NCBI RefSeq assembly: GCF_040938485.1
Contig: NW_027271024.1
Coordinates: forward strand, 2,232,001-2,296,000
Direction of reading: 5' to 3'
Length of the DNA stretch: 64,000 nt
DNA from: Diadema antillarum
Lineage: Eukaryota
The notes beneath the pieces are model-generated. The model was given only the letters and a program-made list of their open reading frames with translations, had not been told where the DNA came from and did not search any database. Both the position numbers and the translations under genes were made by a program. Positions 26,997 to 63,912 of this stretch are shown here, piece by piece. Numbering within the stretch: the stretch's first letter is position 1; every line of letters starts with the position of its first letter.

Positions 26997-27709
26997 AAGG
27001 TCCTACAAGCATACATTTAATATTATATATGCATACACACACAAGCACAAGCACAAACACACACAAAGGAATATGTAGAGAGATGGGTAATTTGCCGTTG
27101 AACCGCCAGTTGCATATACAACCTCATTTAAAGGAGAAAGGCAAATAAATTATTGCAACATGTCAGATAACAGTGTATCTGAATAATCAATCTTTACACT
27201 CGGTTCAATCCTGGGATCCACGCTTATAAAAAGTATACAGCACATTTCTGTTAACATTTATACAAATTTCCATCGATTGACCATCAAGTTCTTTATGTTC
27301 GCAGTATTGAATTGTGCATCCTAGCCAGATATTATTATTCCTTTTGCTTTGATTGTCATATTTGATACTTTTTTCTTTGAGAAAAATCGAAAATACATTG
27401 AAATTCAAATTCAAATTCAAAGACAAAGAAAATAGGGACGTCCCGAGACACAAACACGCACACAAACACACAATGTCATACACGCAGATAGACAAGCAAA
27501 CAAACAAAAACAACTCACCTGAACAGAAGGCCAACCTATTTCCTCGTCGGGTGCACCAGCAAGTCTGATCGTTGTTTATCTGAGTCGCACACGCTGCGAA
27601 CAAAGCGGGAAAAAATGACCCAAAATTGTATTTGATGCAGAAACGAAAAGTTACCTATGTACCAATACGAAAATAATAGGGTTGATTCATCTTATTCATT
27701 TCGTTTCTC

Positions 27710-27747
<38 letters not shown>

Positions 27748-28514
27748 CATCAAAAAAAAAATATAGGTTTCGTCAAAACTGAACAACATTCGACAACATT
27801 TTTTCTGATCTATGTCTTTTTTAATCATCTTTTTAACTCTTTAAAGTTGGAGGAATCGAAAAGATACTTTACGGATTTGTTATCTATGAGAACGGGAAAA
27901 GCAAAAACAAAAATAGAAATAAAGACAAACAAAAACAAAATGAAACAAAACACTTTGCTCCCCTCCCTTCTACCCCGAGAAAACAAAAATGAACAGATAA
28001 CTTAAAAGTTCACATTGTGATGCAGGTTTACGAAGATTTAAAAAAACACAACAACAAACAAACAAACAAACAAACAAACAAACAAACAAATAAGACCCGC
28101 CAGAAGAACATCATGATAACTCACTCAAAAACTCGAGCAATTTTCAAAATATATTATGAAGACGTCTGTCTGTGCTTGTACAAGATTCTTATGTAAATAC
28201 GCACACACACACACACACACACATGTATATGTATATGTATATTCATATATACACATATATAATATGAAAACCTTAATGATAGAAAAAAATATATAAAGTG
28301 CTGGTTTTATAAAGACAGCTAATTGAAAGTCCTTGTACTTACGCTTGTACTTCTTCATGCTCTGACCCCTCTTCTCGGCGAGGTAGAACTCCTGCATGAC
28401 TGGGTCCCTCTTCATGAACTCCATGTCGGTGGCGAATTCGTCGTCGACCTCCATCTTGAAGGCCGAAGCGACGACCACGAGGGCCATAAAAGCGATGAGG
28501 ACCTTGGAAACCAT
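26174..28514 (-). CDS. Gene C: secreted 4-Cys cationic prepropeptide, 90 aa
   Basis: complement(join(28343..28514,27519..27593,26174..26199)). Protein MVSKVLIAFMALVVVASAFKMEVDDEFATDMEFMKRDPVMQEFYLAEKR|GQSMKKYKPCATQINNDQTCWCTRRGNRLAFCSGAAGGEGI*. Canonical splice sites. Confidence 0.92.
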
Positions 28515-29394: not shown

Positions 29395-29440
29395 CATTTG
29401 ATGTAACGAACATGTCTCATAAAGATATCATGTGACATAA

Positions 29441-29489
<49 letters not shown>

Positions 29490-30167
29490 TGGAGATTGAA
29501 AGGGAGGGGAGACTTAATAAGGAGTTAAGACATTTGCTCCAGACCCCCCCCCCCTTCTCATAAGAAAAAAAAATCATTCTTCCCTGTGGACCTTTATCTT
29601 TGGTCGAAAAAACAACAACAAACAAACAAGATAAAACAAAGAAAAATGTGACAGTTCCATCTGGCTAAAGTTGGCTTATCTTAGCTAGGCCTACTCTTAA
29701 GGCTCGGTTGATCATGTATTTTATACTCATGTAATCCATGTGATAATGGTCTCCTGCCGAACAATCTGTCGCTGTTAATTATGTCATGTTAGGAGAATAT
29801 TAAGTTGAAGGGAGTACGGGGAGTTCTAAAAAAAAACAACAACACAAAATAAAACTTCGTGCTGAACTTTCGTCGGGGGTCATCCCACGAGACCAACACC
29901 ACTTGTCATCATACAGCCAATGACTTTGACACTACAGCATGTTCCAGAAAATCATATATAATCATACATTTGTTTTATGTGATGTTCATGAATAGGAAGA
30001 TATAATACCTCTCTCTTTTCGTACGATTCCCAATTTATTATTCATAATTCATGCAAGACTGAGTTAGAACATCAGACAGTATGGCTACTAAAGTTTCATT
30101 TGCACGAGCAAATGGCGACTTTCAATGGGTTTTTCTCAATCTTTTGCAAAAACATGAAACCACAGCC

Positions 30168-34813: not shown

Positions 34814-35578
34814 AAATCATGGGCCTTTAGAGTTTTTAGGCGATGGGATCAGTGTGAGCCCAAGAAAAAAAAAACTAAAACCAAAAAACCCAACATTCAA
34901 ACCATAAAGGCCATCGCCCTTTCTAAACCTAGAATTGTCAGGTCTGGTGAGGTTAACCTATAACTTGCCACACACGCAAAAATGTGATCATCACTAAGTC
35001 TTCTTGGCAGCCAAATCCTATCCTATCAAAACAACAAAATGGGGTCATAGCACTTTGAGGAGATGTGTCATCCTCTTTTAGTTAGAAATGGAAAAGAAAA
35101 AAAAAGTTTTAGGGAGGAGGGGGTTAAGCAAAAATTCCAAGGATTTCAGATGGTTTCTTTACAGCCAAGCGTAAAAGTTACAAATGGAGCAGGACGGAAA
35201 GGCATCACATAACTATGAGCGCATTCATTCCGGAAGACTTTTTATTCTCACTTCAACGTTACATTCCCCTAAGACTGCTTATTAAACACGGGCGTTCATT
35301 GACACATAAACAGTGACAGATTGTCCCTCGAAAGGACATCATCATTTCTACTGAGGTTAGGATGAAATCCATGACCAACCGAGCCTTAAGAGTAGCTAAG
35401 CTACGCACAGCTTGGCCAGATGGAACTCTTAAATTTTGCAATGTTTTGTTTTGTTTTGTTTTATAGAAAAAAAAGGAGTGCCGATAGGGAATAGTTAATT
35501 TACTTTTCAGGGATTCGCGGGCAAATGCCTGGTATTAACAACGCATATGGTCTTTCTTCTTTCCTTCTTTCTCTTTAT

Positions 35579-35747
35579 GTCACGTGACGTGGTTATGAGA
35601 CATATTCGTTACATCGAATAGGATTACCTCTGATCGAGAAATATATAAAAGGCAATCGTTTGACCGGTAGCAACCACCAGACGGCATCCAGAGTTCCTCC
35701 ATTGTCGACCTTCCTACACTTCCATCACACTCAGACAACTACCTAAC
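35579..35747 (+). promoter_or_regulatory. Gene D core promoter and non-coding exon 1
   Basis: GTCACGTGAC at 35579-35588, GGATTA at 35621-35626, TATATAAAA at 35642-35650. Exon ends at 35747, followed by GTGAGT. Confidence 0.78.
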
Positions 35748-36101
35748 GTGAGTATCACCATTTTATTGTCCGCTAGATGTAAATTTTGCCGTTATATCCC
35801 CCATAAATGTAACTACAACGTTAAATGTAATATAGACTTTAAATGTTTATTGACCAAGTCAAACCTAAATTTTGTACATTTTATTTCAACCCTAAATGTG
35901 ATAATCGGAAAAATCCCTGATACGTTTTAACCGTAGATGCAATCACGATCCTATTATAATGTAAAGATTTAACCCTAAATGGAATTATTAGTTAGTATAG
36001 GGTCGACATTATATTTAGAGGTGATGCAGCCATCACCAATGTCCAATGCTAGTACGATCTTGTCATTTTTTTAGGAGTGTCCCGCGGCTCTTTGTCCACA
36101 C

Positions 36102-36164
<63 letters not shown>

Positions 36165-36230
36165 TCACTCTGACAGCCTACCAAAGACTCGATCAACCAG
36201 TCTCTCCATTTAGGTATTCTTAAGATAACA

Positions 36231-36620
36231 TTAAAGGGACTGTACAGTTCTGGTTGAGGTGAGGATTTAGTTTGTAACGTTTTGCGAGATATTCAGAAAC
36301 CACTCTATGAGATGTCAAAAAGCATGTAATTCTAAGGGGTATCAAAAGTTTATTTGATGAAAATCGGTTTTGAAATGGCTGAAATATCCAAAAACAAGGT
36401 GAAACAAAGAGATTCTAATAAAAGGCGTGGCCTGTCGCCTTTCATTATTATTACTTTTTGGATATCTCAGCCATTTGAAAACCAACTCCATCAAATAAAC
36501 GTTGAATCCTTCTTGAAATTACATGCTCTTTCATATTTCATATGAGGTTTCTCATTATCTCACTTAGGAATGTTATAAACCTGAACCCCCATCTGAACCA
36601 GTACTGTACAGTCCCTTTAA
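36231..36620. mobile_element. TTAA-flanked MITE (Kolobok/T2-type) in intron 1 of gene D
   Basis: TTAA-AGGGACTGTACAG ... CTGTACAGTCCCT-TTAA. A TTAA target duplication with AGG termini is characteristic of T2/Kolobok MITEs. Confidence 0.82.
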
Positions 36621-36719
36621 GCCTCATTTACAGGAGTTGGAAGATTCAAGTAAAGAAAAAAAATAAGTTGAATCTTTACCCCAAGTATCGTTTCAAAAAT
36701 CTTTTGTCACAGAGTCAAC

Positions 36720-38385
36720 ATGGTCTGCAAGGTCCTCATCGCTTTCATGGCCCTCGTGGTCGTCGCTTTTGCCTTCGAGATGGAGGTCGATGACGAATTC
36801 GCCGCCGACATGGAATTCATGAAGAGGGACCCGGTCATGCAGGACTTCTACCTCGCCGAGAAGAGGGGCAAGAGCATGAGGAAGTACAAGCGTAAGTAAC
36901 GTGAATCCTGCATGACTAGGGTTAGATGCGCCTGCAGCACTTTCATGAATAACAAATCCCCCCCCCCCCTCGTTCAGGCGGTCAATGATACACTTAAAGT
37001 TACGCTCCAGGTTCTTTTTAGAATTTTGGGATTCCTTTCGGATGGGAACAGGCTTTGAAAGGGAGTCCAGCAAAAATTACCCTCTATCGAGGTATCTGGA
37101 AGGGAAGCCAGCAAAGCAGCATGACGTATGTACAGTGCATGTGGCTAAGTGTCCTGCGAAAAGAATCCCAGCCCGCTGTGCCTGGCAGCAAAACATACAC
37201 ATAAATCAGAGAGATGCGTCTCCCTGCATCAATATATGAGGGATATTCGGGAGATCTGGCAAACACCAAGAAGTCCCACTATATTTCGGTGGTGTTTTTT
37301 TTTTTCGAGGGTTTTCAAACTAATCCTATTCGGAACCCTATTTCAGGATAATTTGGGAAAGATTTCATAACTATGCCTGATTAAGAATATTATTCATGGA
37401 AAAAATACTGAAACAGTCTTTTCGATTCCTCTGACTTTCAGGTCTTAAAGGTCCTGTTAACCTTTGGGAGCAGTGATTTAAATGTTCAAGATATCACCTT
37501 TGATGCATATGTGTAGGTCAGTTGTATCACAAAACATCCTACCATAAATTATAAAATTTTTGCAATAAAGAATAAGATATAAGGAGATATCACTACTTTC
37601 TCACTAAATCATACTGTAGACGGTTTAGCCTGGAAATATTTGTTATTATAACCATTGTTCATATTTTGTTTATATAACAATACTTGACATCGATTATACT
37701 TGTTCAAATTTTACATTTTTTGTTTCTATCCCTAACTCACATATTAGAACTATTTTCAAGCGCCGATGCTGGGTTTTTGTTTCATCTGCAAATGATAAAT
37801 TGTGCCTTTAATATGACTAAAAACATAGAAACAAGGGGAAGATGACCTTGTCGAATATCGTACGGTTTTGTACATTGTTAATGAAAATACCAAATCTAAG
37901 ATAGATGCAATGAAGAAAATGAGTTGAATCCCCCTTTCCAGGTCTCATTCATTCATTTTGTTTCTTTATTCGTCATTTTATTTCGGGGGGATGTGACACA
38001 GTGGATAAAACTCTCGACTCTCAATCGAAGGACGCGAGTTCGATTCCAGAAAAGTGCCTACGTCCTTGGACAAGCCTAGCTTTACCCACCATGTCCCTCT
38101 CGACCCAGGTGCATGCATGAATGGATACCTGGTAATGCTAGGGTAATAGTAATGGCAGGGCCCTCTGGTAGAGCAGTGACAACACTGAAGAGGCTACCCT
38201 GGATAGATAGGACTTTATAACTTTACATAACATATATTCCTCCACTCTGTTCGCAGCGTGTGCTACCCAGATAAACTCAGACCAGACTTGCTGGTGCACC
38301 CGACGAGGAAACCAGTTCGCCTTCTGCACAGGTGAGCTTTTCTTATTGCTTGTTTGTCTGTCCGTTTCGTTGCGTCCATGAGAGA

Positions 38386-38424
<39 letters not shown>

Positions 38425-38713
38425 TCTCTCTCTCTCTCTCTGTTTATGTGTTTATGTGTTTACTGTAACTTTGCTCTTGCGTTTTGGTCAATGTCTGTAT
38501 CAATCAATGTCTTTTTTTTTGGTTTAGCCTTTTCCCACTTTCCAGAAGTCAAGTAAGTAATACGTTGTATCGCTCTTTCCTTCAGCTTAAAAGAAAAAGT
38601 CTCTTCATTTTTATCATATATATATAATTATATATTACATATTGTTTACTATATTATTACAAATCATACTGTGATTCTTCATTTCAGGAGCTGCCGGAGG
38701 AGAGGGCATCTAA
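36720..38713 (+). CDS. Gene D: secreted 4-Cys cationic prepropeptide, 90 aa
   Basis: join(36720..36891,38257..38331,38688..38713). Protein MVCKVLIAFMALVVVAFAFEMEVDDEFAADMEFMKRDPVMQDFYLAEKR|GKSMRKYKPCATQINSDQTCWCTRRGNQFAFCTGAAGGEGI*. AATAAA at 38883-38888. Confidence 0.92.
37445..37811. mobile_element. Second TTAA/AGG MITE family, in intron 2 of gene D
   Basis: TTAAAGGTCCTGTTAACCTTTG ... CAAATGATAAATTGTGCCTTTAA (imperfect TIRs). Orthologous copy at 58085-58454. Confidence 0.65.
37986..38225 (+). mobile_element. tRNA-derived SINE in intron 2 of gene D
   Basis: A-box-like TGACACAGTGG, B-box GAGTTCGATTCC, central CTCGACCCAGGTGCATGAATGGATACC and a LINE-like 3' tail. Orthologous copy at 58650-58880. 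Confidence 0.75.
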
Positions 38714-40831
38714 AAAAAGAACTCCGTCACGACCACTTCAATAACCCCTGACCCGAATCACTCCCGGAAAAAGCCAGGACATGTTCAACGACCAAGAGAA
38801 TGTCATGTAGATTCTGATGTAGCAGCTGCTATAATCACTAATAGTTTCTATGATTTTTGACCCAGATTTTGCCATGGCCTAGAATAAATACGAATATTTT
38901 AAAAAACGGTTGCCTCGCATAGCGTTGTTTAGACTTGATCTTGTCGTCTGTCAATGTTTGGCAAATAATTCTAAGAATGGTGAGAGAATGGTTGGTATGA
39001 CGAAGGTGTTTTGCTGTACTAGAAATGTAGAATGTTAGTAGTAGTATAAGATAAACAAGAACGAACAAAAAGAGGTGTACATATCTATCTCTCTCTCTTT
39101 AGATCTACAAACACTCACTCACACATTGACAATATGATATATGTATATACACACACGTATATATGAATATACAGTATGATATGTGCATTAAATTTTAGTG
39201 TCTGTAAAACACAGAGTAACAAAAGTAGTATCAGGAACTGGCAGGATTATGATTATAGAGAGTGACACCAGTTACGCAAGACACTACGCATTATTGGAAT
39301 GAGATTATTCGAAAAGAAAATTCATATACATTGTTGTAGGTGTCAGAAAAACCCCACCATTTTCTACTGTTGATCTGTAATAGTTACGAAACTATACATA
39401 CCACTGTCATTGATATGAGTTATAGCTGAATAGTGTACAATTTAGTTAAAGGTGATTTGAATATGAAAGTATGAATCAGTTTCATTAAATCCATGATTAA
39501 TTCTAAAGTTAAGTTCCAGAGTTTGGTCGAATTTGAACTCTCTGTACAAAATCAAACTTTACACAAGAACCAATGATGTGTATATGAGAATGTGTGCTTA
39601 CAATGACCCCTAACAATAGACATGAATACCACAAATACCACCTTTTCAGAGCATTGCTGACTAGGCTTAAGGTCTCTTGCTCAGACGCGCATGGATGCTT
39701 TATTAATAATTCATGATGGATTGCCCAGGGCATCTACTGCTAGTCTGAATTCTTGGTAAGGGGTAAAATGCATGCACATGAAAAAAGTAAGCACATGTTT
39801 TCATGTGCTTTTAAACACTACATTTCAGGATGAATAAAAGACTAGCTGTGATAGTGTAATAGAGCATTCAAACCCTGGCCATTGTTTAGGACCATTGTCT
39901 GGGTGTTAACCACACACTCCCATACACAGCAATTAACCCCTGTGCAAAGTGAAAGTTTTGTATAGAGGGTTGAAAATAGAGCAAAATCTGAAACTTTACT
40001 TCAATAAAAATAAATCTTGAGCTTATTGAAACTGATTTATGCTCCTTTTTCAAATTACCTTCGACAAAATTGTACATTTTATCAGTTATTGCTCATACAA
40101 ATGTCAGTGTTTTTTGATATATAGTATTTGATATATTAAAGATAAAAAGTGGGAAATGTTTGAAGATATACATAATATGATATATGATATATAAATATGT
40201 ATTATGATATTCAATGTAGCAAACCACTCTTTAACGTCAGGATCGGATTTGATAAATCATCATGTTATATATCATGCTAAACACAAGGCAAGGCTTATGA
40301 TATCAAAATACAAAGTTAAACTGATTTTAAATGACAGTTTGGGGTTTTTTTTAGCAACACCAAAATTGGTATAGGTATCATTTTTTGCAATTTAATTTTC
40401 AATGAATTTATACTGTATCTCAAAATAATAGGTAATGCACTATACATAATAATGTAATATGAAATATCATATTTTCATCACATTTAACATAACAATTCGT
40501 TCGATTGCTATCAATGGAAATTGTAGTGTAAATGAAATAAATAAACCAGGAAATACAGCATGTATCACAAGTTGTACTGTTACTCGTACAGAAATGAAAA
40601 GTCTGTAAGGTTAAGGTCTGAGGGGTAAGAGTGATTTAATGATATAATAACGTTGCTTGATAGAAAGCCTGAATTTACAAACAAACCTAACGAATCTGCA
40701 TCAATCAAACCTGTAAATGTCTTGGAAGGCATGTATAATGACACCCTTACCTGGGTTGCAGTTTTCACAAGTCTTCAATGACACGATGAATAACATATCA
40801 ATGTGGCACTAAATGATGCAGGAATAACACG

Positions 40832-40868
<37 letters not shown>

Positions 40869-41826
40869 GGGGGGGGAGAAGGAAATAGAAGATATAAAGT
40901 GAACAAGACGAGATTATCATTTTTTTTTCATTTACATTAATCTAGTATCTTGCTTTTTGAAAGTTTGTTTTCTATTGTGTTACTCTTTGCGGTACTTTTA
41001 GTTATTGATTGTTTCTTGATGTACTGTTAAATGTATATTCATGTAGTGATGGGCAGTGTATTATACAATATCATATCATCTAATTTAGGGATTGTAATGA
41101 AATCATAGCTGTGTTACATGTATTTTACATTTGAATCGTTCTATGTTCGTTCTATGTGTCTTCTATCGTTCTAAATGTATTGTTGTGTATACAGCCATGA
41201 TATTTGTTTATATTCAAGACGTATGTATATATATATATATATACATTTTTTTTTGCACTTTACCGTTATTTATGTATGTATGTTGACCCATATGGAAACC
41301 AGGTCTGCTGATCACGGTGTTCCACCCCAAGAAGTGGCAATAAATTCAAATGCATGATTAATTATAACATGGCATTGATCCATGATATTAGGTGTTTTTT
41401 CTTTTCTCTGTTTAGTTTTACAGGTCATGGTAATTGAGTTTATCTCAAATGGGGGCTCTACCAGTCATGGGTTTCCTAAATTTCAGTGGTAGCCACATTT
41501 TCAATTATTTTGTCAGGGCTAGGAAAATGAAACTGCTTTATTAGTTTGATCAAGAACATGCTTTGTGTATCGATAGGTATATCGTCGAGTGTAAAAGACA
41601 GTACAATATTAACAAATTTACTTTTGATTTACGCTCCCCCACTTTGGTTCTTGCAACTGCAAGTGTTGCAAGTGATGTTATAAGTACATGTATTATTGTT
41701 CGGACTATTTTTGAACATAAAAATGGACAAACTATTATTATATAGTAATAGTTGTAATAATTATTGTAGCTCAGTTATGTTTGTTTCATACATTTTTGAA
41801 CAGACAGTGGATATAAATTCAAATCA

Positions 41827-44259: not shown

Positions 44260-44532
44260 ATGGTAAGCAAGGTCCTCATCGCTTTCATGGCCCTCGTGGT
44301 CGTCGCTTCAGCCCTCGAGTTCGCCGAGGGAGATGAGTACGCCGCCGACATGGAGTTCATGAAGAGGGACCCGGTCATGCAGGAGTTCTACCTCGCCGAG
44401 AAGAGGGGCCAGAGCATGAGGAAGTACAAGCGTAAGTATCACTTGAATTTGTCTGCTTTTCTAAAACCTGCCTCTACATTTCTTTAAGATGTGATATTAT
44501 TGTTATGCATATTGAAGAGTTTAAATAAAAAA

Positions 44533-44576
<44 letters not shown>

Positions 44577-45487
44577 TATATATCCATTTGATTAATTTGA
44601 GATATGTGATATTGAAACTGCTGAAAAGCAAACAAAATAATCAAAATGTATTCGAATGTTCTGGTAGATTACACGTCATATATTTTCAAAGAGTGCTTTT
44701 AATATGATCATATATAATTGGTTGATGAAAATCATTGTTGACCATCGTTAAGTAACTTCATAACGTAACCTTTTGTTTGGATATTCCCATTAGGACAGAT
44801 TTCAATGTATGAATTTTGATTCTTCATTTATTTATTCATATGTGCGTAATAGTGTTCTCTTAAACACATTCGTACAGTACTTTTGCAATCTCTCCATGCA
44901 AGCTTTTTTTTTATGATACAAAGTTTTGTTTAAAAAAAGGTCAAAACTGACAGAATGACAGATTGTATGTATACATTGGAAAGAAAAAAAAATAAAAGTA
45001 AGATTAAAGAAATTAGTAACATGAGACGACCACATTATGACCATATCTTATGATATGGTGAGGTGTTTTTTTTTCGATCCTGGCTCACACTCATTTACTT
45101 TTTTTTCCCGTTAATTTGCTCGCAGCGTGTGCCACCCAGCTGAACGAGGACCAGACCTGCTGGTGCAGTCGACGAGGTGGCAAGTTCGCCTTCTGCTCAG
45201 GTAAGCTGTTGTTAGATAATAATTTCCTTGTCTGCCTGTCTGTGTACATGTGGATGTGTGTGTTATGGTTTAGCAGAATGGACGTCTGTTTCTTTTAGTT
45301 GCTTTTGAAACCGATTGTTCAGATAGGATTTTACTTAATAATTACGTAATGTTGATATATCTCTTTAAGCCTTTTCTTGTCACTAAACAAGCGTAAGCTA
45401 TATTGTTCTTTTACTCATCGTTCTTTATTTTATCATCTGTTATCTTTATTTTTCATTTCAGGAGCTGCCGGAGGAGAGGGAATCTAA
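44260..45487 (+). CDS. Gene E: secreted 4-Cys cationic prepropeptide, 90 aa
   Basis: join(44260..44431,45126..45200,45462..45487). Protein MVSKVLIAFMALVVVASALEFAEGDEYAADMEFMKRDPVMQEFYLAEKR|GQSMRKYKPCATQLNEDQTCWCSRRGGKFAFCSGAAGGEGI*. AATAAA at 45669-45674. Confidence 0.92.
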
Positions 45488-48625: not shown

Positions 48626-50413
48626 ATGGTGTCCAAGGTTGTGATGGTCTTTGCGACCCTCGTGGTCGTCGCGTCGGCTCTCAATTTCGCCGAGGAAGAC
48701 AACTTCGCCGCCGACATGGAATTCATGAAGAGGGACCCGATCATGCAAGAGTTCTACCTCGCCGAGAAGAGGGGCGAGAACACGAAGAAGTACAAGCGTG
48801 AGTAGGAATTAGATGCGAAGAACGGTGCAGTGACTAGCAAATAACTGTCATTTTGCCATTCACCGTCAGTATTAGTGAGCCAGATAAGGTCCTATTCATT
48901 TTGTTATACAGGACATTGACGATGTTTAATCTAAGAAGGTACATACCACACTTCAATTTTAGTTACGGTTTTATTTGTAGTCAAACAATCAATAAGAAAA
49001 TGATTATCAATGAGGGGAAGAGAAGGGGGAGAAATTCAGGCAGCATGTCCATGCTTGATTTAATATTTGAAGAGTTTTATCGCAAAATGACCCACGCGCC
49101 ATTTTCAAGCATTTAATAGTAAGTCCATCATCAGATAGAACAATATTAAACCTTTCTTGTGTTGCGTCACTTGTGACGTAACAAGGAATATTCTATAAGT
49201 TATGACCAAAAATATTCTGATTTTTTAATCATTTTCTTTGTTTTTCTTTAGCAGCTTTAATCACAAATGTATCAACTTAATGAAAATGGATTTAGCTCGT
49301 TTTGCGATAAAACTCTTTATTTCATAAGCCGGGCTCTGAGTTTAATTTATTTATGTTCCCTTTATTTGAGGCATTTCATCATGTGTCACACATACCTTTG
49401 TCATTAGTAGTTATATGAAGAAAAAATGATAAGAAAATACTGAATACTTTTAATCATAACGTCTAGAATATCCCTTGTAATGTCACAAGTGAGGTATTAC
49501 TGGAAAGGTTTGAGTTTGCTCTATCTGATGATGGACTTACTTTGAAAGGTTTAAAATTGGCGTTTAGCTCATTTTGCAATATTTTTTTTTCATTATATGA
49601 ACTTTAAGTTAACTTCATTTGAATACTTTTCAATTTTTGTTGTTTCAAACAGTTATCTATCTGATTTTCTCGACAGCTTGTGCGACCCAAGTCAATGCAG
49701 ACCAGACCTGCTGGTGCACCCGTCGAGGAAATAGATTCGTATTCTGCACAGGTGAGGGGGATAGCACGTTAACTCAACGAATTCAATAATTTTAGATTGA
49801 TCTGGCATTATTATTATTTTTTGTTTTGGTGACGGAAATAACCTCGGCATTCAGATACATTTCAAATTTTATGATATTGGAAAATATTTTAGAAAATACG
49901 ACTGTGGATACGCAGAAAACTTTCATTTCTTCATAATTGAGAGTCTATTTTTTGACCAGAAAGCAAAGATTTCGAAAAGTAACACGTTTGCACAATGAAG
50001 CATGACAAATTTGAAATAATAGGACTGTATCATTGAGAATCTGCTAAATTTTCTAGCTGAAGATATCACTGGCGGATTCACCGATTGTACTGTTATCTCA
50101 GTATTTACGGTTGACGTCTTGATTTCATTCTATTTTCATCTTTATTTCATTTTAATCGAGTACACGTAAGGTGTATATACCACAAGTTATTTTGTCTTGA
50201 CCTTTGTGTGTGTGTGTGTGTGTGTGTTTGTGCGATACATTCTCTTGCATGAGATTCGGTTCTCAACTTTGTTATGATTGTGAAGGCCTTCATTTGAATC
50301 ATCATTATACGTGCGCTTTTTTTTTTCTTAACGTTATTTTCTATTCTTTTTTTGTCCAATACTTCTTAATTTTCAAATAATTTGCAGAAGTTGGCACTGG
50401 AGAGGGAATATAA
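48626..50413 (+). CDS. Gene F: divergent paralog of the 4-Cys prepropeptide family, 90 aa
   Basis: join(48626..48797,49677..49751,50388..50413). Protein MVSKVVMVFATLVVVASALNFAEEDNFAADMEFMKRDPIMQEFYLAEKR|GENTKKYKPCATQVNADQTCWCTRRGNRFVFCTEVGTGEGI*. Same exon sizes as the others. The last acceptor is CAGAAG (NAGNAG). Confidence 0.88.
49066..49580. mobile_element. Nested inverted-repeat (MITE-like) region in intron 2 of gene F
   Basis: AAGAGTTTTATCGCAAAA (~49071) is mirrored at ~49277-49298. AGTAAGTCCATCATCAGATAG and CTTGTGAC..TATTCTA are mirrored at ~49460-49540. Confidence 0.55.
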
Positions 50414-52447: not shown

Positions 52448-52532
<85 letters not shown>

Positions 52533-53019
52533 GGGTAAGGAATGAAACGCTGGAAGATGATCAGAGGATGTATTAATATGTTGATAGAGAACAGTGAGAA
52601 TGACTGACGTAGTATTTTGTTTGAAATGCATTTACGGATATGGTTACAAGTTTGACAATATGAACTGTATGATGCAACATTTAAACAGCATCTTTAACAC
52701 TCACGTGTTCATTGTTCGACCGTCATAAATGTTTTTTTTTTCCTTCTATCAGCGAACAATAGACATAAGATACTTTTCGCTATACCTGATTTCACTCCGA
52801 ACGCAAAGCTATATCATATTCTGCCAAAACATCGTCGAAAAAAGGATCCGTAAAAACTGCCACATTGAAGATTTGGATATCTAGATGATGTCTGTTGGTA
52901 CATGACTGTGTGGCATTTGTATTGATTTGTCTGTTTGTATGTCTCTCGCACTCTTTATCATTGGCGGTGCACTTAAATTGTTTGTTTGTTTGTTTGTTCA
53001 TTTCCATCTGAGAGATGGT

Positions 53020-53841: not shown

Positions 53842-56152
53842 CTAGATATTCAGAAGACACGTACAGGAAAAAAGAATATATAAAGCAAAACATAAAAAAA
53901 AGCTGCGCTGTGCCTCATCAACATACTTCACAACAACATGAGATTCCAATGCCTTTTTTTTTTGCAATAAAATGCCTTTTAACAAGCTAACAAAAACAAA
54001 GTAGAAGAACATCCAGCACAAATCTTCATATTCAATTTGAAATGAATTTCAGTCAATAAAAAGGATGAAACAAATAGATTTTCCAAAGTAGTCCAACATA
54101 AAGAAGAAATATGATATCTGTTGTCCAAAGGTCAAAATAATAAGGACATTATCATTGAAATATTGCCTTCCAAATAAATCTTAGCCCAGTTAGGATGAGA
54201 TGATGAAGCAATATAGAAAGAAGGAGGAAGAGAAGGAAGAAAAAGAAATATAAGTAGAGGGAAAAGAAGAAACATAAGAAGAAGGTGAAGAAGAGATTAC
54301 GGTCGTGTTCACTCGTATTATGTGACAACTAAGAATTCACATACATTTTGTATATACATTGCATACCAATGGTATTCGAGGAATTAATTATTGCGTCAGA
54401 GGGGGCTCATTGTTATTGCTAGTTTTTGCGGGGGTTGGATATTTTTTAGGATACATTCATTTAAATTGTTTCAATTGGTAAACTGAAATGTAATAGCATA
54501 ATCAAATAAAAACTATCTTTATAAAGGCCTACTTGTCGCTCTTAGTCAACTGTCTTTGAAATTTTGTTGAGGTGACTGACTTGGTTTTGGCCTGAAGATT
54601 TAAAGGATGTTCGACGCAATCTCTTGTGAAAAGTTCTGAAACGAAGTGATGTAATTTATTGTATTTCAATTTGTACGCATGCTCACTAAGTATCAGAAGA
54701 CGAACTAAATAAGTTAAGAAAAGAGTGAATAAGCAAAATTTGCTATGCACTAAGTTGTATTGGCTACTTCTATAGAAGTTTAAATCCAGTTCTTACTTTC
54801 TATTTACAGATTGTAATCTTAAGCCTCTTTTAAGGATCTTGAGAAATTTGAAGATCTCGTAACAAATTCTCAACAACTCTATCGTCATTGGTTGTGATAT
54901 TCCTGTTGTGTCGATTTTTAAGGCATGTGGCCTTGGCGTAACCATCTAAGATGAGTTTAGTTTGAAAACACACCTTAATATTATGTAAACCAGCAGCTCT
55001 GTGTTTATAAAACTATAATAAAGAAACTGGAGAATGCGTCTATTTTAGTCATTTTGATAATGATAATGATTTGCTTATTAAATTCTGGAATCTCAGCTCA
55101 CAGCAGGAGTCGAACGGAAACGAAATTCAGCCGCAAGGCTTCTAACTTGCAAAAGGCAATCGGATCACAAAACTCCTAACCTTTATATTCTTCATTGGAT
55201 GCCGATAAAGGCCATTATGAAGATTTGACAATTGTATTCTTGATTGGAAATGCCCCACCTATAACATCTATCTACATATGCCTGCATGATGTCTTCGATT
55301 CCACCGTAATGATGAAATCTAAGGGATAATAATTTCAGTTTAGGCAGTTCGAAATTGTGTACAGCATACAAGAATACATACATTCAAATCATGAAGATCA
55401 AGAAGCCTTTAGAGTTTTTAGGCGATGGGATCAGTGTGAGCCCAAGGAAAAAAAAAAACTAAAACCAAAAAACCCAACATTCAAACCATAAAGGTCATCG
55501 CCCTTTCTAAACCTAGAATTGTCAGGTCTGGTGAGGTTAACCTATAATTGCCACACACGTCAAAAATGTGATCATCACTAAGTCTTCTTTACAGCCAAAT
55601 CCTACCCTATCAAAACAACAAAATGGGGTCATAGCACTTTGAGGAGATGTGTCATCCTCTTTTAGCTAGAAATGGAAAAGAAAAAAAAAGTTTTAGGGAG
55701 GAGGGGGTTAAGCAAAAAGTCCAAGGATTTCAGATGGTTTCTTTACAGCCAAGCGTAAAAGTTACAAATGGAGCAGGACGGAAGGGCGTCACATAACTAT
55801 GAGCGCATTCATTCCGGAAGACTTTTTATTCTCACTTCAACGTTACATTCCCCTAAGACTGCTTATTAAACATGGGCGTTCGTTGAAACATAAACAGTGA
55901 CAGATTGTCCGACGAACATCATCATTTCTACTGAGGTTAGGATGAAATCCATGACCAATAGAGCCTTAAGAGTAGCTAAGCAACGCACAGCTTGGCCAGA
56001 TGGAACTCTTAAATTTTGCAATGTTTTGTGGTTTTTTCTTAGAAAAAAAGAGTGCCGACAGGGAAAAGTTAATTTACTTTTTAGGGATTGGCGAGCAAAT
56101 GCCTGGTATTAACAACGCATATGGTCTTTCTTCTTTCCTTCTTTCTCTTTAT

Positions 56153-56317
56153 GTCACGTGACGTGGTTATGAGACATGTTCGTTACATCAAGTGGGATTA
56201 CCTCTGATCGAGAAATATATAAAAGGCAATCGTTTGAAGGGTAGCGACCACCAGACGGCATCCAGAGATCCTCCATAGTCGACCTTTCTACACTTCACAC
56301 TCAGGCAACTACCTAAC
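56153..56317 (+). promoter_or_regulatory. Gene G core promoter and non-coding exon 1
   Basis: GTCACGTGAC at 56153-56162, GGATTA at 56195-56200, TATATAAAA at 56216-56224, donor GTGAGT at 56318. Confidence 0.78.
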
Positions 56318-56676
56318 GTGAGTATCACCATTTTATTGTCCGCTAGATGTAAACTTTGCCGTTATATCCCCCATAAATGTAACTACAACGTTAAATGTAA
56401 TATAGACTTTAAATGTAGGCCTCGTTTATTGACCAAGTCAAACCTAAATTTAGTACATTTTATTTCAACCCTAAATGTGATAATCGGAGAAAAAACACTG
56501 ATACGTTTTAACTCTAGATGCAATTACGATCCTATTATAATGTAAAGAATTAACCCTAAATGGAATTATTAGTTAGTATAGGGTCGACATTAGATTTAGA
56601 GGTGATGCAGCCATCACCAAATGTGCAATGCTAGTACGATCTTGTCATTTTTTTTAGGAGTGTCCCGTGGCTCTTT

Positions 56677-56816
56677 NNNNNNNNNNNNNNNNNNNNNNNN
56701 NNNNNNNNNNNNNNNNNNNNNNNNNNNNNNNNNNNNNNNNNNNNNNNNNNNNNNNNNNNNNNNNNNNNNNNNNNNNNNNNNNNNNNNNNNNNNNNNNNNN
56801 NNNNNNNNNNNNNNNN
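56677..56816. other. Assembly gap (140 N)
   Basis: Run of N. The orthologous interval in copy 1 (about 36095-36180) holds a (TAT)n tract. Confidence 0.98.
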
Positions 56817-56867
56817 ACCAAAGACTTGATCAACCAGTCTTTCCATTTAGGTGTTCTTAAGATAACA

Positions 56868-57259
56868 TTAAAGGGACTGTACAGTTCTGGTTGAGGTGAG
56901 GATTTGGTTTTTAACGTTTTGCGAGATATTCAGAAACCACTCTATGAGATGTCAAAGAGCATGTAATTCTAAGGGGCATCAAAAGTTTATTTGATGAAAA
57001 TCGGTTTTGAAATGGCTGAGATATCCAAAAACAAGGTGAAACAAAGAGATCCTAATAAAAGGCGTGGCCTGTCGCCTTTCATTATTATTACTTTGTTGGA
57101 TATCTCAGCCATTTGAAAACCAACTCCATTAAATAAACGTTGAATCCTTCTTGAAACCACATGCTCTTTCATATTTCATGAGGTTTCTCATCATCTCACT
57201 TAATAGGAATGTTATAAACCTGAATCCCCACCTGAACCAGTACTGTACAGTCCCTTTAA
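56868..57259. mobile_element. Same TTAA MITE in intron 1 of gene G
   Basis: Same TIRs and TTAA flanks as 36231-36620. Confidence 0.82.
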
Positions 57260-57359
57260 GCCTAATTTACAGGAGTTGTAAGATTCAAGTAAAGAAAAAA
57301 AAATAATTTGAATCTTTACCCCAAGTATCGTTTCAAAAATCTTTTGTCGCAGAGTCAAC

Positions 57360-59057
57360 ATGGTCTGCAAGGTCCTCATCGCTTTCATGGCCCTCGTGGT
57401 CGTCGCTTTTGCCTTCGAGATGGAGGTCGATGACGAATTCGCCGCCGACATGGAGTTCATGAAGAGGGACCCAGTCATGCAGGACTTCTACCTCGCCGAG
57501 AAGAGGGGCAAGAGCATGAGGAAGTACAAGCGTAAGTAACATGAATCCTGCATGACTAGGGTTAGATGCGCCTGCAGCACTTTCATGAATAACAAATCCC
57601 CCCCCCCTCGCTCAGGCGGTCAATGATACACATAAAGTTATGCTCCAGGTTCTTTTTAGAATTTTGGGATTCCTTTCGGATGGGAACAGGCTTTGAAAGG
57701 GAGTCCAGCAAAAATTACCCTCTATCGAGGTATCTGGAAGGGAAGCCAGCAAAGCAGCATGACGTATGTACAGTGCATATGGCTAAATGTCCTGCGAAAA
57801 GAATCCCAGCCCGCTGTGCCTGGCAGCAAAACATACACATCAATCAGAGAGGTGCGTCTCCCTGCATCAATATATGAGGGAAATTCGGGACATCTGGCAG
57901 ACACCAAGAAGTCCAACTATATTTCGGTGGTGTTTTTTTTTTTTCGAGGGTTTTCAAATTAATCCTATTCGGAACCCTATTTCAGGATAATTTGGGAAAG
58001 ATTTGATAACTATGCATGGTTAAGGAATATTATTCATGGAAAAAATACTGAAACAGTCTTTTCGATTCCTCTGACTTTCAGGTCTTAAAGGTCGTGTTAA
58101 CCTTTGGGAGCAGTGATTTAAATGTTCAAGATATCACTTTTGATGCATATGTGTAGGTCAGTTGTATCACAAAACATGGTACCATAAATTATAAAATGTT
58201 TGCAATAAAGCCTAAAATACAAGGAGATATCACTATATTTCTCATTAAATCATACTGTGGACGACTTAGCCAGGAAATATTTGTTATTATAACTGTTGTT
58301 CACATTTTGTATATTTAACAATACTTAACATTGATTATACTTGCTCAAATTTTTACATTTTTTGTTTCTATCCCTAACTCACATTTTAGAACTACTTTCA
58401 AGCGCTGATGCTGGGTTTTTTGTTTCATCTGCAAATGATAAATTGTGCCTTTAATATGATTAATATATAGAAAAAAGGGGAGAGATTAGCTATGACCTTG
58501 TCGAATATCGTACGGATTTGTCTGAAGCTATCTGTACATTGTTCATGAAAATACCAAATGTAAGATAGTTGCAATGAAGAAAATGAGTTGAATCCCCCTT
58601 TCCAGGTCTTATTCATTTATTTTGTTTCTTTATTCTTCATTTTATTTCTGGACGATGTGACAAAGTGGATAAGACTATTGACTCTCAATCGGAGGACCCG
58701 AGTTCGATTCCCTCAAAGTGCCTACGTCCTTGGACAAGTTAATTTTACCCGCCATGTCCCTCTCGACCCAGGTGCATGAATGGATACCTGGTAATGCTAG
58801 GGTAATAATAATGGCAGGGCCCTCTGGTAGAGCAGTGACAACACTGATGAGGCTACCCTGGATAAATAGGACCTTATAACACTACATATTATATTCCTCC
58901 ACTCTGTTCGCAGCGTGTGCTACCCAGATAAACTCAGACCAGACTTGCTGGTGCACCCGACGAGGAGGCCAGTTCGCCTTCTGCACAGGTGAGCTTTTCT
59001 TATAGTTTGTTTGTCTGTCTGTTTCGGTGCGTCCGTGAGAGAAGAGAGAGAGAGAGA

Positions 59058-59092
<35 letters not shown>

Positions 59093-59382
59093 CTCTCTCT
59101 CTCTCTCTCTCTGTGTGTGTGTATGTGTTTAGTGTAACTTTGCTCTTGTGTTTTGCTTAATGTCTGTATCAATCAATGTCTTTTTTTTTTTGGGCTTTAG
59201 CCTTTCCCACTTTGCATAAGTCAAGTAAGTAATACGTTGTATCGCTCTTTCCTTCAGCTTAAAGAAAAAGTTTCTTCATTTTTATTATATATATATCACT
59301 ATATATTACATATTGTTTACTATAATTACATATTATATTGCGATTCTTCATTGCAGGAGCTGCCGGAGGAGAGGGCATCTAA
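57360..59382 (+). CDS. Gene G: duplicate of gene D, 90 aa (N->G in the mature peptide)
   Basis: join(57360..57531,58914..58988,59357..59382). Mature peptide GKSMRKYKPCATQINSDQTCWCTRRGGQFAFCTGAAGGEGI*. It differs from D by 2 synonymous nt in exon 2 and by AAC->GGC in exon 3. AATAAA at 59552-59557. Confidence 0.9.
58085..58454. mobile_element. Orthologous TTAA/AGG MITE in intron 2 of gene G
   Basis: Colinear with 37445-37811. Confidence 0.65.
58650..58880 (+). mobile_element. tRNA-derived SINE in intron 2 of gene G
   Basis: Same element as 37986-38225 (B-box GAGTTCGATTCC). Confidence 0.75.
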
Positions 59383-62300
59383 AAAGGAACTCCGTCACGA
59401 CCCCTTCAATGACCCCTGACCCGAATTACTCCCGGAAAAAGCCAGGACACGTTCAACGACCAAGAGAATGTCATGTAGATTCTGATGTAGCAGCTGCTAT
59501 AATCACTTGTTAGTTTCTATGATTTTTGACCCAGATTTTGCCATGGCCTAGAATAAATACGAATATTTTAAAAAACGGTTGCGTCGCATAGCGTTGTTTA
59601 GACTTGGTCTTGTCGTCTGTCTATGTTGGCAAATAATTCTAAGAATGGTGAGAGAATTGTTGGTATGATGAAGGTGTTTTGCTGTACTAGAAATGGAAAA
59701 TGTTAGTAGGAGTATAAGATAAACAAGAACGAACAAAAAGAGGTGTACATATCTATATCTCTCTCTTTAGATCCACAAGCACTCACTCACACATTGACAA
59801 TATGATATATATATATACACACGTATATATAAATATACAGTATGATATGTGCATTTAGTGTCTGTAAAACACAGAGTAACAAAAGTAGTATCAGGAACTG
59901 GCAGGATTATGATGATAGATAGTGACACCAGTTACGCAGGACACTACGCATTATTGGAATAAGATTATTCGAAAAGAAAATTCATATACATTGTAGTAGG
60001 TGTCAAAAAACCCCACCATTTTCTACCTTTGATCTGTAATAGTTACGAAACTATACATACCACTGTCATTGATATGAGTTATAGCTGAATAGTGTATAAT
60101 TTAGTTGAAGGTGATTCGAATATGAAAGCATGAATCATTTTTTATTAAATCCATGATTAATTCTAAAGTTAAGTTCCAGATTTTGGTCGAATTTGAACTC
60201 TCTGTACAAAATCAAACTTTACACAAGAACCAATGATGTGTATGAGAATGTGTGCTTACAATGACCCTTAACAATAGACATGAATACCACGAATACCACC
60301 TTTTCAGAGCTCTGCTGACTAGGCTTATGGTCTCTTGCTCAGACGCGCATGGATGCTTTATTAATAATTCATGATGGATTGCCCAGGGCATCTACTGCTA
60401 GTCTGAATTCATGGTAAGGGGTAAAATGCATGCACATGAAAAAAGTAAGCACATGTTTTCATGTGCTTTTAAACACTACATTTCAGGATTAATAAAAGAC
60501 TAGCTGTGATAGTGTAATAGAGCATTCAAACCCTTGCCATTGTTTAAGACCATTGTCTGGGTGTTAACCACACACTCCCATACACACTAATTAACCCCTG
60601 TGCAAAGTGAAAGTTTTGTACAGAGGGTTGAAAATAGAGCAAAATCTGAAACCTTACTTCAATAAAAATAAATCTTGAGTTTATTGAAACTGATTTATGC
60701 TCCTTTTTAAAATTACCTTCGACAAAATTGTACACTTTATCAGTTATTGCTCATACCAATGCCAGTGTTTTTTGATATATAGCTTTTGACATATTAAGGA
60801 TCAAAGTGGGAAATGTTTTAAGATATACATAATATGATATATGATATATAAACATGTGTTATGACATTCAATGTAGCAAACCACTCTTTAACTACAGGAT
60901 CGGGTTTGATAAATCATCATGTTATATATCATGCTAAACACAAGGCAAGGCTTATGATATCAAAATACAAAGTTAAACTGATTTTAAATGACAGGTTTTT
61001 TTTAGCAACACCACAATTGGTACAGGTATTTTTTTCAATTTAATTTTCAATGAATTTATACTGTATCTCAAAACAATAGGTAATGCACTATACATTATTC
61101 TAATATGAAATATCATATTTTCATCACATTTAACATATCAATTCGTTTGATCGCTATCAATGGAAATTGTAGTGTAAATGAAATAAATAAACCAGGAAAT
61201 ACATAATGTATTACAAGTTGTACTGTTACTCGTACAGAAATGAAAAGTCTGTAAGGCAAAGGGCTGAGGGGTAAGAGTGATTTAATGATATAGTAACGTT
61301 GCTTGACGGCTAGGACAATGAAACTGCTTTATTAGTTTGATCAAGAACATGCTTTGTGTATCGATAGGTATCGTCGAGTGTAAAAGACAGTACAATATTA
61401 ACAAATTTACTTTTGATTTACGATCCCCCACTTTGGTTCTTGCAACTGCAAGTGTTGCAAGTGATGTTATAGGTACATGTATTATTGTTCGGATTATTTT
61501 TGAACATAAAAATGGACAAACTATTATTATATAGCAATAGTTGTAATAATTATTGTAGCTCAGTTATGTTTGTTTCATACATTTTTGAACAGACAGTGGA
61601 TATGAATTCAATTCAAATCAATCAATTAATCAATCAATCAATCAATCAATTAATCAAAATTACAAATCACTAATCCCAATCATTTATCAGTAATAACTAA
61701 TTAGTAAAAAAGACAAACTCACAACAATAAGCTCTCGTCCTTACTTTTCCGTGACTTATTCACGGAACATTTCTAATTCCATTTCTACGTTTTTAGGTAG
61801 TTTTAATGCTTTATTCTCATAGTATAAACACACAGCAACATCCAAACGCCATTACTAGAGAAACCAATCATAGATAAATTCATAATTGGCATAAATAACA
61901 TAAATAGATTAAAAAAAGGAGATGTGATACATTTTTGTAAATCTTTTAATATTTAGAATATAACAATCTTACCAACATCCAAAAAATGCTTAGAGATTCC
62001 ATCGAGGTATAATATAATACTTTGAACATGAGGTGTTGAGCATGATTACGAATATAAATGTAAATGTAACATTTTGTGTGTGTGCATTTAATTATCTAAC
62101 ATTACACATTCCCATTTGACTAAATAAATTTATTGATTCCACTTTAATGTTGAGAACAATGGGGTGATAATTTCAATCTCTTACCGTTCAAAATTGTGTT
62201 CAGCATACAACAATAATACACACTGTCTGAAAACTATAAAGTCCTTGGTCTTTTAAAACCTAGAGTTGTCAAGGTGATGATTGCTAACTGTTTGCCGCAC

Positions 62301-62935: not shown

Positions 62936-63912
62936 TATATAAAAGGCAGTCGTTTGACGGGTAAAGATCATCAGACGCCAGCAAGAGATCCTCAACAGTC
63001 GACCTTCCAACACATCCATCACAACTACGTGAGTATCACCGTCGTATTGTCAGCACCCTAGCTTTAACTTTTCCGTTGTATAACTTCTACACGTAGTAAC
63101 AGCATCACATTTAATATGATTCATTTTAAGCCTTAATGTGATATCAACCCTTAATAGAATTATTCTAACGCTATTATGTAAGCTCATAATAATCAATTCA
63201 AACGTAAATGTACGAAATTTTAACCCAGGCCTAAACAATTGCTGAATGTCATACCAAAACAAGAAACAATCCTGAATGTTGAACATTTCAACCATGGTTC
63301 ATAATATTGACTCTAAAAAGAATGAGTTTTCCCATAAATTTAGTTAAGTCAGTATACTAGTCACTATGTCAACCAATTCACATGCAATGAAAATGGTATC
63401 TGGGCAGGTTGGTGAGGAAAAGGTCTAATAGCTCTTTATCCATATTATTGTTTGAAATTTTGATTTTGATTGTCTTCCAGATGTTTTATCAATGAATCAC
63501 TCAATTTTAATTTCCTTGAAGATAAGGTGACGATAGATTGCAAGGGTAGTTTAACAGTAAGGATAGATAGTTAAGATAGTAAAACAAGCTATATGACAGG
63601 TNNNNNNNNNNNNNNNNNNNNNNNNNNNNNNNNNNNNNNNNNNNNNNNNNNNNNNNNNNNNNNNNNNNNNNNNNNNNNNNNNNNNNNNNNNNNNNNNNNN
63701 NNNNNNNNNNNNNNNNNNNNNNNNNNNNNNNNNNNNNNNNNNNNNNTGGATAGAAACCAAGTTCATGCTGTCATTACCATGAAATTATTTCGGCACACAA
63801 ATTTTCGAGCTATTCGCCCTTTCTCAAGTGCTCTTGATTCACAAGAACACTTGAGAAAGGGTGAATCGCTCGAAAATTTGTGTGCAGAAATAAACTTTTG
63901 GTATTTTATATG

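Follow-up and report, generated by a model that had tools for sequence, protein, structure and literature searches.

Reviews recognise three families of antimicrobial peptides in echinoderms, namely the strongylocins, the centrocins, and PpCrAMP. The PpCrAMP precursor of the sea star Patiria pectinifera (MF443207, UniProt A0A223G1S1), printed in a review supplement, is 79 residues long. Its signal peptide of 21 residues is followed by an acidic propeptide with KR at its end and by a 39-residue part starting with G, in which fifteen mostly basic or glycine residues are followed by C-X8-C-V-C-D-K-R-K-G-G-A-A-V-T-C-G and the stop codon. The peptide was purified via its antibacterial activity (review and review supplement), and two reviews describe its structure as a beta-hairpin, with a coil linking the two strands. 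Here, we analyzed a 64,000-nucleotide stretch of the sea urchin Diadema antillarum (contig NW_027271024.1, positions 2,232,001 to 2,296,000, referred to below as the window) that contains a cluster of genes with the cysteine framework C-X9-C-W-C-X9-C. These are probably seven (or six) intact paralogous genes for small secreted cationic peptides, members of an echinoid-wide family that is remotely homologous to PpCrAMP and, by analogy, antimicrobial. A list of candidate immune effectors in D. antillarum is of practical use, as the species has gone through repeated mass die-offs. The initial annotation of the locus had given a PpCrAMP framework of C-X8-C-X-C-X10-C with a KRKGG loop and 38 residues plus a terminal glycine, which agrees with the precursor in the review supplement.

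The gene cluster and its echinoid relatives

A six-frame scan of the window for C-X9-C-W-C-X9-C returned exactly seven matches, four on the forward strand starting at 38259, 45128, 49679, and 58916 and three on the reverse strand at 11387-11455, 18640-18708, and 27523-27591, whereas none of 200 mononucleotide shuffles of the window used as a control contained the framework. Beyond these seven genes, no extra copies or fragments of exon 1 or of the cysteine motif were found elsewhere in the window. Every framework copy (7/7) is part of an intact gene whose coding sequence spans three exons, and the seven spliced frames are uninterrupted, 89-90 codons long, with canonical splice sites and both introns in phase 1. 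Coding exon 1, located ~0.6-1.4 kb 5′ of each cysteine exon, carries the ATG, a hydrophobic signal peptide, an acidic propeptide whose end reads F-M-K-R-D-P-x-M-Q-[ED]-F-Y-L-A-E-K-R and so supplies the KR site, and the cationic stretch G-x-x-[MT]-[RK]-K-Y-K, followed in all seven genes by one extra base and a phase-1 donor, GTAAGT or GTGAGT. The codon completed across this junction, directly before Cys1, is proline in each case (C/CG or C/CT). The second phase-1 intron splits a glycine codon (G/GA) after Cys4-Ser/Thr in six of the seven genes; in the remaining one, g48.6k (Table 1), the split codon is G/AA, for glutamate. An eight-codon tail exon is the short last coding exon of every gene, and the tail reads AAGGEGI in four genes, AAGGEAI in one, AGNGAAI in one, and VGTGEGI in g48.6k. 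The genes, all paralogous, are laid out as a head-to-head tandem of three reverse-strand and four forward-strand copies. The segment that had drawn attention to the locus, 38257-38713, runs from coding exon 2 of g36.7k (38257-38331) through the stop codon of its coding exon 3 (38688-38713), and the cysteine exon of this gene translates as (P)-C-ATQINSDQT-C-W-C-TRRGNQFAF-C-T, then a single G ahead of a GTGAGC donor. The scan and the gene models bear out the initial annotation in that all seven peptides carry the framework on one exon and that a cationic N-terminus, following KR, ends the preceding exon in 7/7 genes. Its further statement that a split glycine codon leads into an AAGGEGI exon stands for the glycine, with the one exception given above, but the AAGGEGI sequence is literally present in only four tails.

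NCBI gene models of D. setosum and D. antillarum join the exons in the same way as in the window genes, and two NCBI Diadema proteins equal window gene products in protein sequence (P0003 for g44.3k and P0030 for g12.4k). The older paralogues can be aligned only in the three coding exons and short flanks, and their introns are unalignable. Summed over all pairs of window genes, which are not independent of one another, the ratio of nonsynonymous to synonymous substitution rates (dN/dS) was 0.34 for the signal peptide and propeptide, 0.40 for the cationic N-terminus, 0.23 for the cysteine core, and 0.44 for the tail, which comprises eight codons only. Values of 0.23-0.44 in every region, the tail included, indicate purifying selection throughout.

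Relatives were sought in two ways, by scoring 1.84 billion proteins with a profile built from five Diadema proteins and by a word-index search using a 13-sequence alignment, and both recovered echinoid proteins only, together with unnamed transcript and read-assembly products. The species represented are D. setosum, D. antillarum, Lytechinus pictus, L. variegatus, and Strongylocentrotus purpuratus, and all relatives carry the database name 'uncharacterized protein'. Word-index protein searches with exon 1 or the mature region alone returned Diadema proteins only, Pfam scans of exon 1 and three cysteine exons gave no family even at an E value of 10, and literature searches on Diadema and antimicrobials or its genome, as well as a review of urchin venom, yielded nothing like this family. 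A comparison of 34 complete members from Diadema, Lytechinus, and Strongylocentrotus showed that they share the KR site, a near-invariant glycine following it, [ML]-[KR]-K-[YF]-K, four invariant cysteines, R-[RK] after Cys3, a second loop fixed at nine residues, and an invariant glycine two residues past Cys4. The first loop comprises 4 to 9 residues, and its length separates a long-loop group, to which the window genes belong, from a short-loop group. Both phase-1 introns are present in the three proteins that were mapped to their loci (S. purpuratus LOC105439745 and LOC115921513 and L. pictus LOC129274580), and the first of them lies one codon before Cys1 in these three loci as in the seven window genes. 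A more divergent genomic contig, from an ENA assembly, shares this first intron and carries an exon reading C-X6-C-S-C-X9-C-S-G.

In the family tree, each window gene pairs one-to-one with a D. setosum or D. antillarum protein, and the seven window genes together represent an expansion of the long-loop group that is specific to Diadema, with six or seven long-loop genes there compared to one or two each in S. purpuratus, L. variegatus, and L. pictus, the counts outside the window coming from clustered databases and being incomplete. The PpCrAMP-like family is thus widespread and multi-copy in sea urchins, with two subfamilies distinguished by the first loop and a conserved gene structure, and its long-loop type has expanded specifically in Diadema. 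That this expansion supplies the spine or epidermal secretion ('venom') of diadematids and not internal immunity is pure speculation and highly improbable. Its sole basis is the lineage-specific expansion, to which may be added that diadematid spine toxins are still unidentified according to the urchin venom review, but the incomplete copy counts weaken that basis, and the family, tail included, is also found in urchins that do not have venomous spines.

The alignment of the echinoid family to the PpCrAMP precursor supports the proposal of the initial annotation that these peptides are echinoid relatives of PpCrAMP, as a remote relationship. In hhalign, the echinoid profile matched the precursor with a probability of 95.2% (E value 2.6e-8 for a single target) and 35% identity, and the 66 aligned columns cover signal peptide, propeptide, and mature peptide alike. 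The same precursor scored 16.7 bits with the echinoid profile in hmmsearch, a score reached by 3 of 2000 segment-wise shuffles in which the signal, propeptide, and mature parts were permuted separately, and the PpCrAMP mature part alone scored 12.2 bits, reached by 1 of 2000 shuffles in which the cysteines were held fixed. The best pairwise partner of PpCrAMP, at 21.7 bits, is S. purpuratus LOC115921513, an orthologue of the Diadema cluster that, like PpCrAMP, has no KR-DP segment. For a single pre-specified comparison within one phylum, we regard this as good evidence of remote homology, and as weak evidence in absolute terms.

Several points weigh against reading the cluster as a family of PpCrAMP-related antimicrobial peptides. 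The similarity is weak, at 12-22 bits, and would fail a database-wide threshold, and no asteroid protein appeared in the profile search of 1.84 billion proteins. The Cys4-Gly-stop end of PpCrAMP is replaced in the window genes by Cys4-[ST]-Gly plus seven residues from a separate exon, or, in one gene, by Cys4-T-Glu plus seven, and a G-K-K inside the tail of LOC105439745, described below, argues that the glycine after Cys4 need not be the amide donor. The antimicrobial role of the echinoid members is proposed by analogy with PpCrAMP, and purifying selection together with a very conserved N-terminus and propeptide is not typical of fast-evolving immune effectors. The low scores, the missing asteroid relative, the very long PpCrAMP branch in the tree (3.7 changes per column), and the differing loop lengths (8/10 vs 9/9) and C-terminus would also fit convergence, in which an independent echinoid family of disulfide peptides shares the C-Xn-C-X-C-Xn-C layout and the signal, acidic propeptide, and KR architecture by chance. 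We consider convergence quite unlikely because of the shuffle controls, in which sequences that keep the composition of each segment or the cysteine positions match the real score in only 1-3 of 2000 cases. The hhalign match across all three precursor parts also speaks against it, as do the common phylum and the details shared beyond the cysteines, which comprise KR/G, C-E-x-x-F in loop 1, x-[KR]-[RK]-x-G after Cys3, and the glycine after Cys4. A metagenome scan with the PpCrAMP precursor, aimed at the sea-star genomic locus, found none.

Precursor processing and the C-terminal tail

If the cluster encodes relatives of PpCrAMP, the precursors would enter the secretory pathway, where a proprotein convertase would cut after KR and release a peptide of net charge ~+2 to +5 that would fold into a small beta-sheet with two disulfides and act, by analogy with PpCrAMP, as an antimicrobial effector. 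The acidic propeptide would neutralise the cationic peptide until cleavage. Counted from the sequence, the propeptide has a net charge of ~-8 and two cleavage-type sites, an internal KR-DP and the terminal E-K-R. The C-terminal part that follows is 41 residues long, with a near-invariant glycine, M-[KR]-K-Y-K, C-X9-C-W-C-x-R-R-...-C-x-G, and a seven-residue Gly/Ala-rich tail, and has a net charge of +1.7 to +4.7 and an isoelectric point of 8.5-9.5. An AlphaFold2 model built with a 26-sequence alignment (mean predicted local distance difference test score 74.5) has strands at residues 7-9, 19-23 (T-C-W-C-T), and 29-33 (F-A-F-C-T), the latter two separated by an R-R-G-N-Q turn, and a tail of low confidence (50-63). 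In the simplest register of this hairpin, Cys2 (residue 20) would lie opposite Cys4 (residue 32), leaving Cys1 for Cys3, which would be compatible with the pairing reported for PpCrAMP, Cys1-Cys3 and Cys2-Cys4. The modelled hairpin agrees with the beta-hairpin that reviews give for PpCrAMP. A Foldseek search of the PDB with the model gave no match below an E value of 0.6 and only incidental hairpins (catalase-peroxidases, SH3 domains), and a PDB sequence search with the family profile gave nothing at an E value of 10.

The segment between the two KR sites is a possible second product, an acidic 11-mer D-P-V-M-Q-[ED]-F-Y-L-A-E that is encoded within 36816-36869 and at the corresponding place in exon 1 of the other six genes. 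The relatives in Diadema and Lytechinus and most of those in Strongylocentrotus retain this 11-mer, but PpCrAMP and S. purpuratus LOC115921513 lack it, and, judging from its position between dibasic sites, it could be a second bioactive product. Neuropeptide precursors have the same architecture, with a signal peptide, a spacer, dibasic sites, and a conserved glycine near the C-terminus, and the genes might accordingly have a neuropeptide- or hormone-like signalling role in which dibasic cuts release the disulfide peptide and the acidic 11-mer, D-P-x-x-Q-x-[FYL]-x-x-A-E across the family, either of which would act on a receptor. Both G-x-x-M-[KR]-K-Y-K and the segment between the KR sites are conserved from Diadema to two camarodont genera, above the expectation for an immune effector, and dN/dS values of 0.2-0.4 give no sign of diversifying selection. 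We nevertheless consider a signalling role unlikely, given that the only characterised relative, PpCrAMP, was purified by antibacterial activity, that tandem multi-copy expansion and net cationic charge are typical of immune effectors, and that no neuropeptide-type amidation signal follows the glycine.

For the antimicrobial-peptide reading, the conserved tail poses a concrete question of maturation, namely whether it is clipped and the peptide amidated or whether it is retained. Among 26 aligned mature regions, 25 continue after Cys4-x as G-[A/V/Q]-x-x-[G/A/D]-x-x-[I/M/V], a stretch that in most cases is exactly eight residues long and in two is extended by 2-3 residues. Only S. purpuratus LOC105439745 departs from this pattern, with G-A-F-G-G-K-K as its end after Cys-Phe. 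In all three mapped foreign loci, the tail stands alone on the last coding exon, with its glycine codon split by a phase-1 intron. The initial annotation had described the tail as an addition in the seven Diadema peptides, and this does not hold, as the same tail, G-A-x-x-G-x-x-[I/M/V], recurs in nearly all of the 34 members from Diadema, Lytechinus, and Strongylocentrotus, with the same intron in the three loci mapped. A tail exon shared by Diadema and camarodonts with the same intron must predate the split between them, and on this sequence comparison the tail is ancestral to the echinoid family and under selection. Its suggested role as an inhibitory extension is unlikely in view of the charge, since the tail contains no more than one acidic residue (0-1) and reduces the net charge by 1 at most; the propeptide, strongly acidic by its predicted charge, better fits an inhibitory or neutralising role.

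The absence of a basic residue after the glycine, and with it of the classical Gly-basic amidation signal, agrees with the initial annotation that simple amidation is not predicted. Two fates of the tail appear about equally likely, namely trimming at the invariant glycine by a non-dibasic route, which would give a 33-residue C-terminally amidated peptide, and retention as a flexible C-terminus. The invariance of the glycine in the family and the stop of the PpCrAMP precursor at the corresponding glycine count for clipping and amidation, and the missing basic residue counts against it. The tail of LOC105439745 finishes with a classical G-K-K, so that in this paralogue, at least, some of the tail is kept. 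A more specific version of the first fate, in which the conserved tail is a recognition element for C-terminal processing without basic residues, so that it would be clipped at the invariant glycine and the glycine converted to the amide, and has been kept since the Diadema/camarodont split, in every case behind the phase-1 intron through its glycine codon, seems to us unlikely. If true, it would represent an undescribed kind of amidation signal in deuterostomes, and echinoids and sea stars would arrive at the same amidated end via different precursor designs.

Head-to-tail cyclisation of the cyclotide type, suggested by the N-terminal glycine and the tail, was rejected, as the residue before the glycine is not a conserved Asn/Asp (it is T, S, A, N, G, Q, L, or F). 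PpCrAMP itself is said to have been isolated as a linear, amidated peptide, which was also weighed against cyclisation.

Copy number and sequence context

The coding exons of the seven genes are listed in Table 1. Two ~6-kb blocks, 34823-40660 and 55405-61306, are 94% identical and carry g36.7k and g57.4k, respectively, which differ by one amino acid and show the synonymous divergence (dS) given in the table. A run of N at 56677-56816 interrupts the second block (another lies at 63602-63746), and the tree holds a single D. setosum orthologue of this pair, P0001. Because of the near identity of the blocks and the assembly gap, the true gene count is six or seven, and the pair may be either a recent tandem duplication or two haplotypes, that is, one locus assembled twice. 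In a comparison of window positions 8574-21053 with contig JBFRCO010000104.1 of D. antillarum assembly GCA_040938485.1, the identity was 96% over one stretch and 88-91% over others, and by this measure the window sequence is not the same assembled haplotype as that contig but derives from a different haplotype, another individual, or a closely related Diadema species.

Table 1 Coding exons of the peptide genes in the window, by gene
Gene	Coding exon	Position	Strand	Content	Remark
g36.7k	1	36720..36891	+	Signal peptide, acidic propeptide, KR, GKSMRKYK, first base of Pro codon	Donor GTAAGT, phase 1
g36.7k	2	38257..38331	+	(P)C-X9-C-W-C-X9-C-T and first base of Gly codon	Acceptor ...TTCGCAG, donor GTGAGC, phase 1
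g36.7k	3	38688..38713	+	(G)AAGGEGI and stop	Acceptor ...CATTTCAG
g44.3k	1	44260..44431	+		Protein identical to database protein P0003 (Diadema setosum/antillarum)
g44.3k	2	45126..45200	+	Cys exon	Framework scan
g44.3k	3	45462..45487	+	(G)AAGGEGI and stop	Gene model
g48.6k	1	48626..48797	+	N-terminus GENTKKYK	Most divergent copy; donor GTGAGT
g48.6k	2	49677..49751	+	Cys exon	Framework scan
g48.6k	3 (putative)	50388..50413	+	(E)VGTGEGI and stop, split codon G/AA	Least certain exon
g57.4k	1	57360..57531	+		Recent duplicate of g36.7k; dS 0.038 vs g36.7k
g57.4k	2	58914..58988	+	Cys exon, RRGG vs RRGN in g36.7k	Framework scan
g57.4k	3	59357..59382	+	(G)AAGGEGI and stop	Gene model
g12.4k	1	12241..12412	-		Identical to D. 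antillarum P0030 over the 90-residue precursor
g12.4k	2	11383..11457	-	Cys exon, CDTQVNPSQTCWC...	Donor GTCTGT, weaker than other genes' donors
g12.4k	3	10901..10926	-	(G)AGNGAAI and stop	Agrees with P0030 C-terminus
g19.5k	1	19307..19475	-	Propeptide one codon shorter	Gene model
g19.5k	2	18636..18710	-	Cys exon	Framework scan
g19.5k	3	17563..17588	-	(G)AAGGEAI and stop	Gene model
g28.5k	1	28343..28514	-		Gene model
g28.5k	2	27519..27593	-	Cys exon	Framework scan
g28.5k	3	26174..26199	-	(G)AAGGEGI and stop	Gene model

As modelled (49748-49790 and 50388-50413), g48.6k is without the otherwise invariant glycine. Its D. setosum orthologue, P0005, ends ...CTGEGIAR, unlike the modelled exon 3 of the window gene, and this C-terminus looks like a read-through of the donor into the intron. 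Compared to P0005, g48.6k has one extra G in a G run at 49748-49790, which shifts that read-through frame. The C-terminus of g48.6k may be changing, or this copy may be decaying.

Six database proteins, from gene models or transcripts (P0030, P0037, P0038, P0009, P0032, and P0035), have an in-frame N-terminal extension ahead of the signal-peptide Met, and these extensions share D-F-[IL]-F-H-S-S-T-P between Diadema and Lytechinus, which points to a putative 5′ leader exon, conserved and spliced in immediately ahead of the ATG.

Adjoining the reverse-strand peptide genes, an open frame at 8619-9257 on the forward strand contains a reverse-transcriptase domain (Pfam RVT_1, E value 9.7e-25) and represents a retrotransposon fragment. 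Runs of (GA)n lie at 38373-38441 (intron 2 of g36.7k), 59034-59112, 17194-17231, 29440-29492, 40830-40870, and 52490-52535; at 38373-38441, (GA)n is directly followed by (TC)n to form a perfect inverted microsatellite, with a similar arrangement at 59034-59112 in the duplicate g57.4k. Intron 1 of g36.7k has, at 37960-38200, the look by eye of a short interspersed element derived from a transfer RNA (tRNA), with GTGGATAAAAC...GGTTCGATTCC-like box, and neither ARAGORN nor Rfam reported anything there. The tRNA and Rfam scans of the whole window were empty.

Comparison with described echinoderm peptides

Like the strongylocins and centrocins, the window genes encode cationic, secreted echinoid peptides with tryptophan from propeptide-bearing precursors. 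In contrast to the six cysteines of strongylocins, the window mature parts have only four, and the six-cysteine motif is not found in them. Centrocins are two-chain heterodimers with one interchain disulfide, whereas the window peptides are single chains with four cysteines and no interchain spacer. No sequence similarity to either family was seen, neither having been recovered in any protein search made here.

Activity is known for PpCrAMP only, as reportedly are disulfide pairing and amidation, and PpCrAMP and the window peptides differ in a number of details. The window genes have loops of 9 and 9 residues vs 8 and 10 in PpCrAMP, tryptophan vs valine between Cys2 and Cys3, an N-terminal stretch of 9 vs 15 residues, an additional conserved KR-DP...AE segment in the propeptide, and one residue inserted between Cys4 and the glycine. 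Kim and co-workers are said to have reported in 2018 that PpCrAMP is C-terminally amidated and that an intron separates its cationic N-terminus from the cysteine domain. They reportedly also described an S. purpuratus relative, SpCrAMP, which would be a direct orthologue of the Diadema cluster if it corresponds to one of the S. purpuratus loci of this analysis, among which LOC115921513 matches PpCrAMP best. Such a report would make the urchin members less novel; a literature search with the S. purpuratus LOC and XP identifiers and with 'SpCrAMP' found no relevant paper. LOC115921513 has the C-X9-C-W-C-X9-C framework, the same introns as the window genes, and the tail AAGGENI, and is a single gene in S. 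purpuratus vs six or seven in Diadema.

PpCrAMP and the window peptides nevertheless share their precursor design. In both, a precursor of 79-90 residues opens with a signal peptide, continues through an acidic propeptide to KR, and closes with a mature peptide whose first residue is glycine, a cationic N-terminal stretch precedes Cys1, and the four cysteines are arranged as C-Xn-C-X-C-Xm-C. Basic residues and glycine come right after Cys3 (C-[TS]-R-R-G in the window genes, C-D-K-R-K-G-G in PpCrAMP), and a glycine stands just past Cys4.

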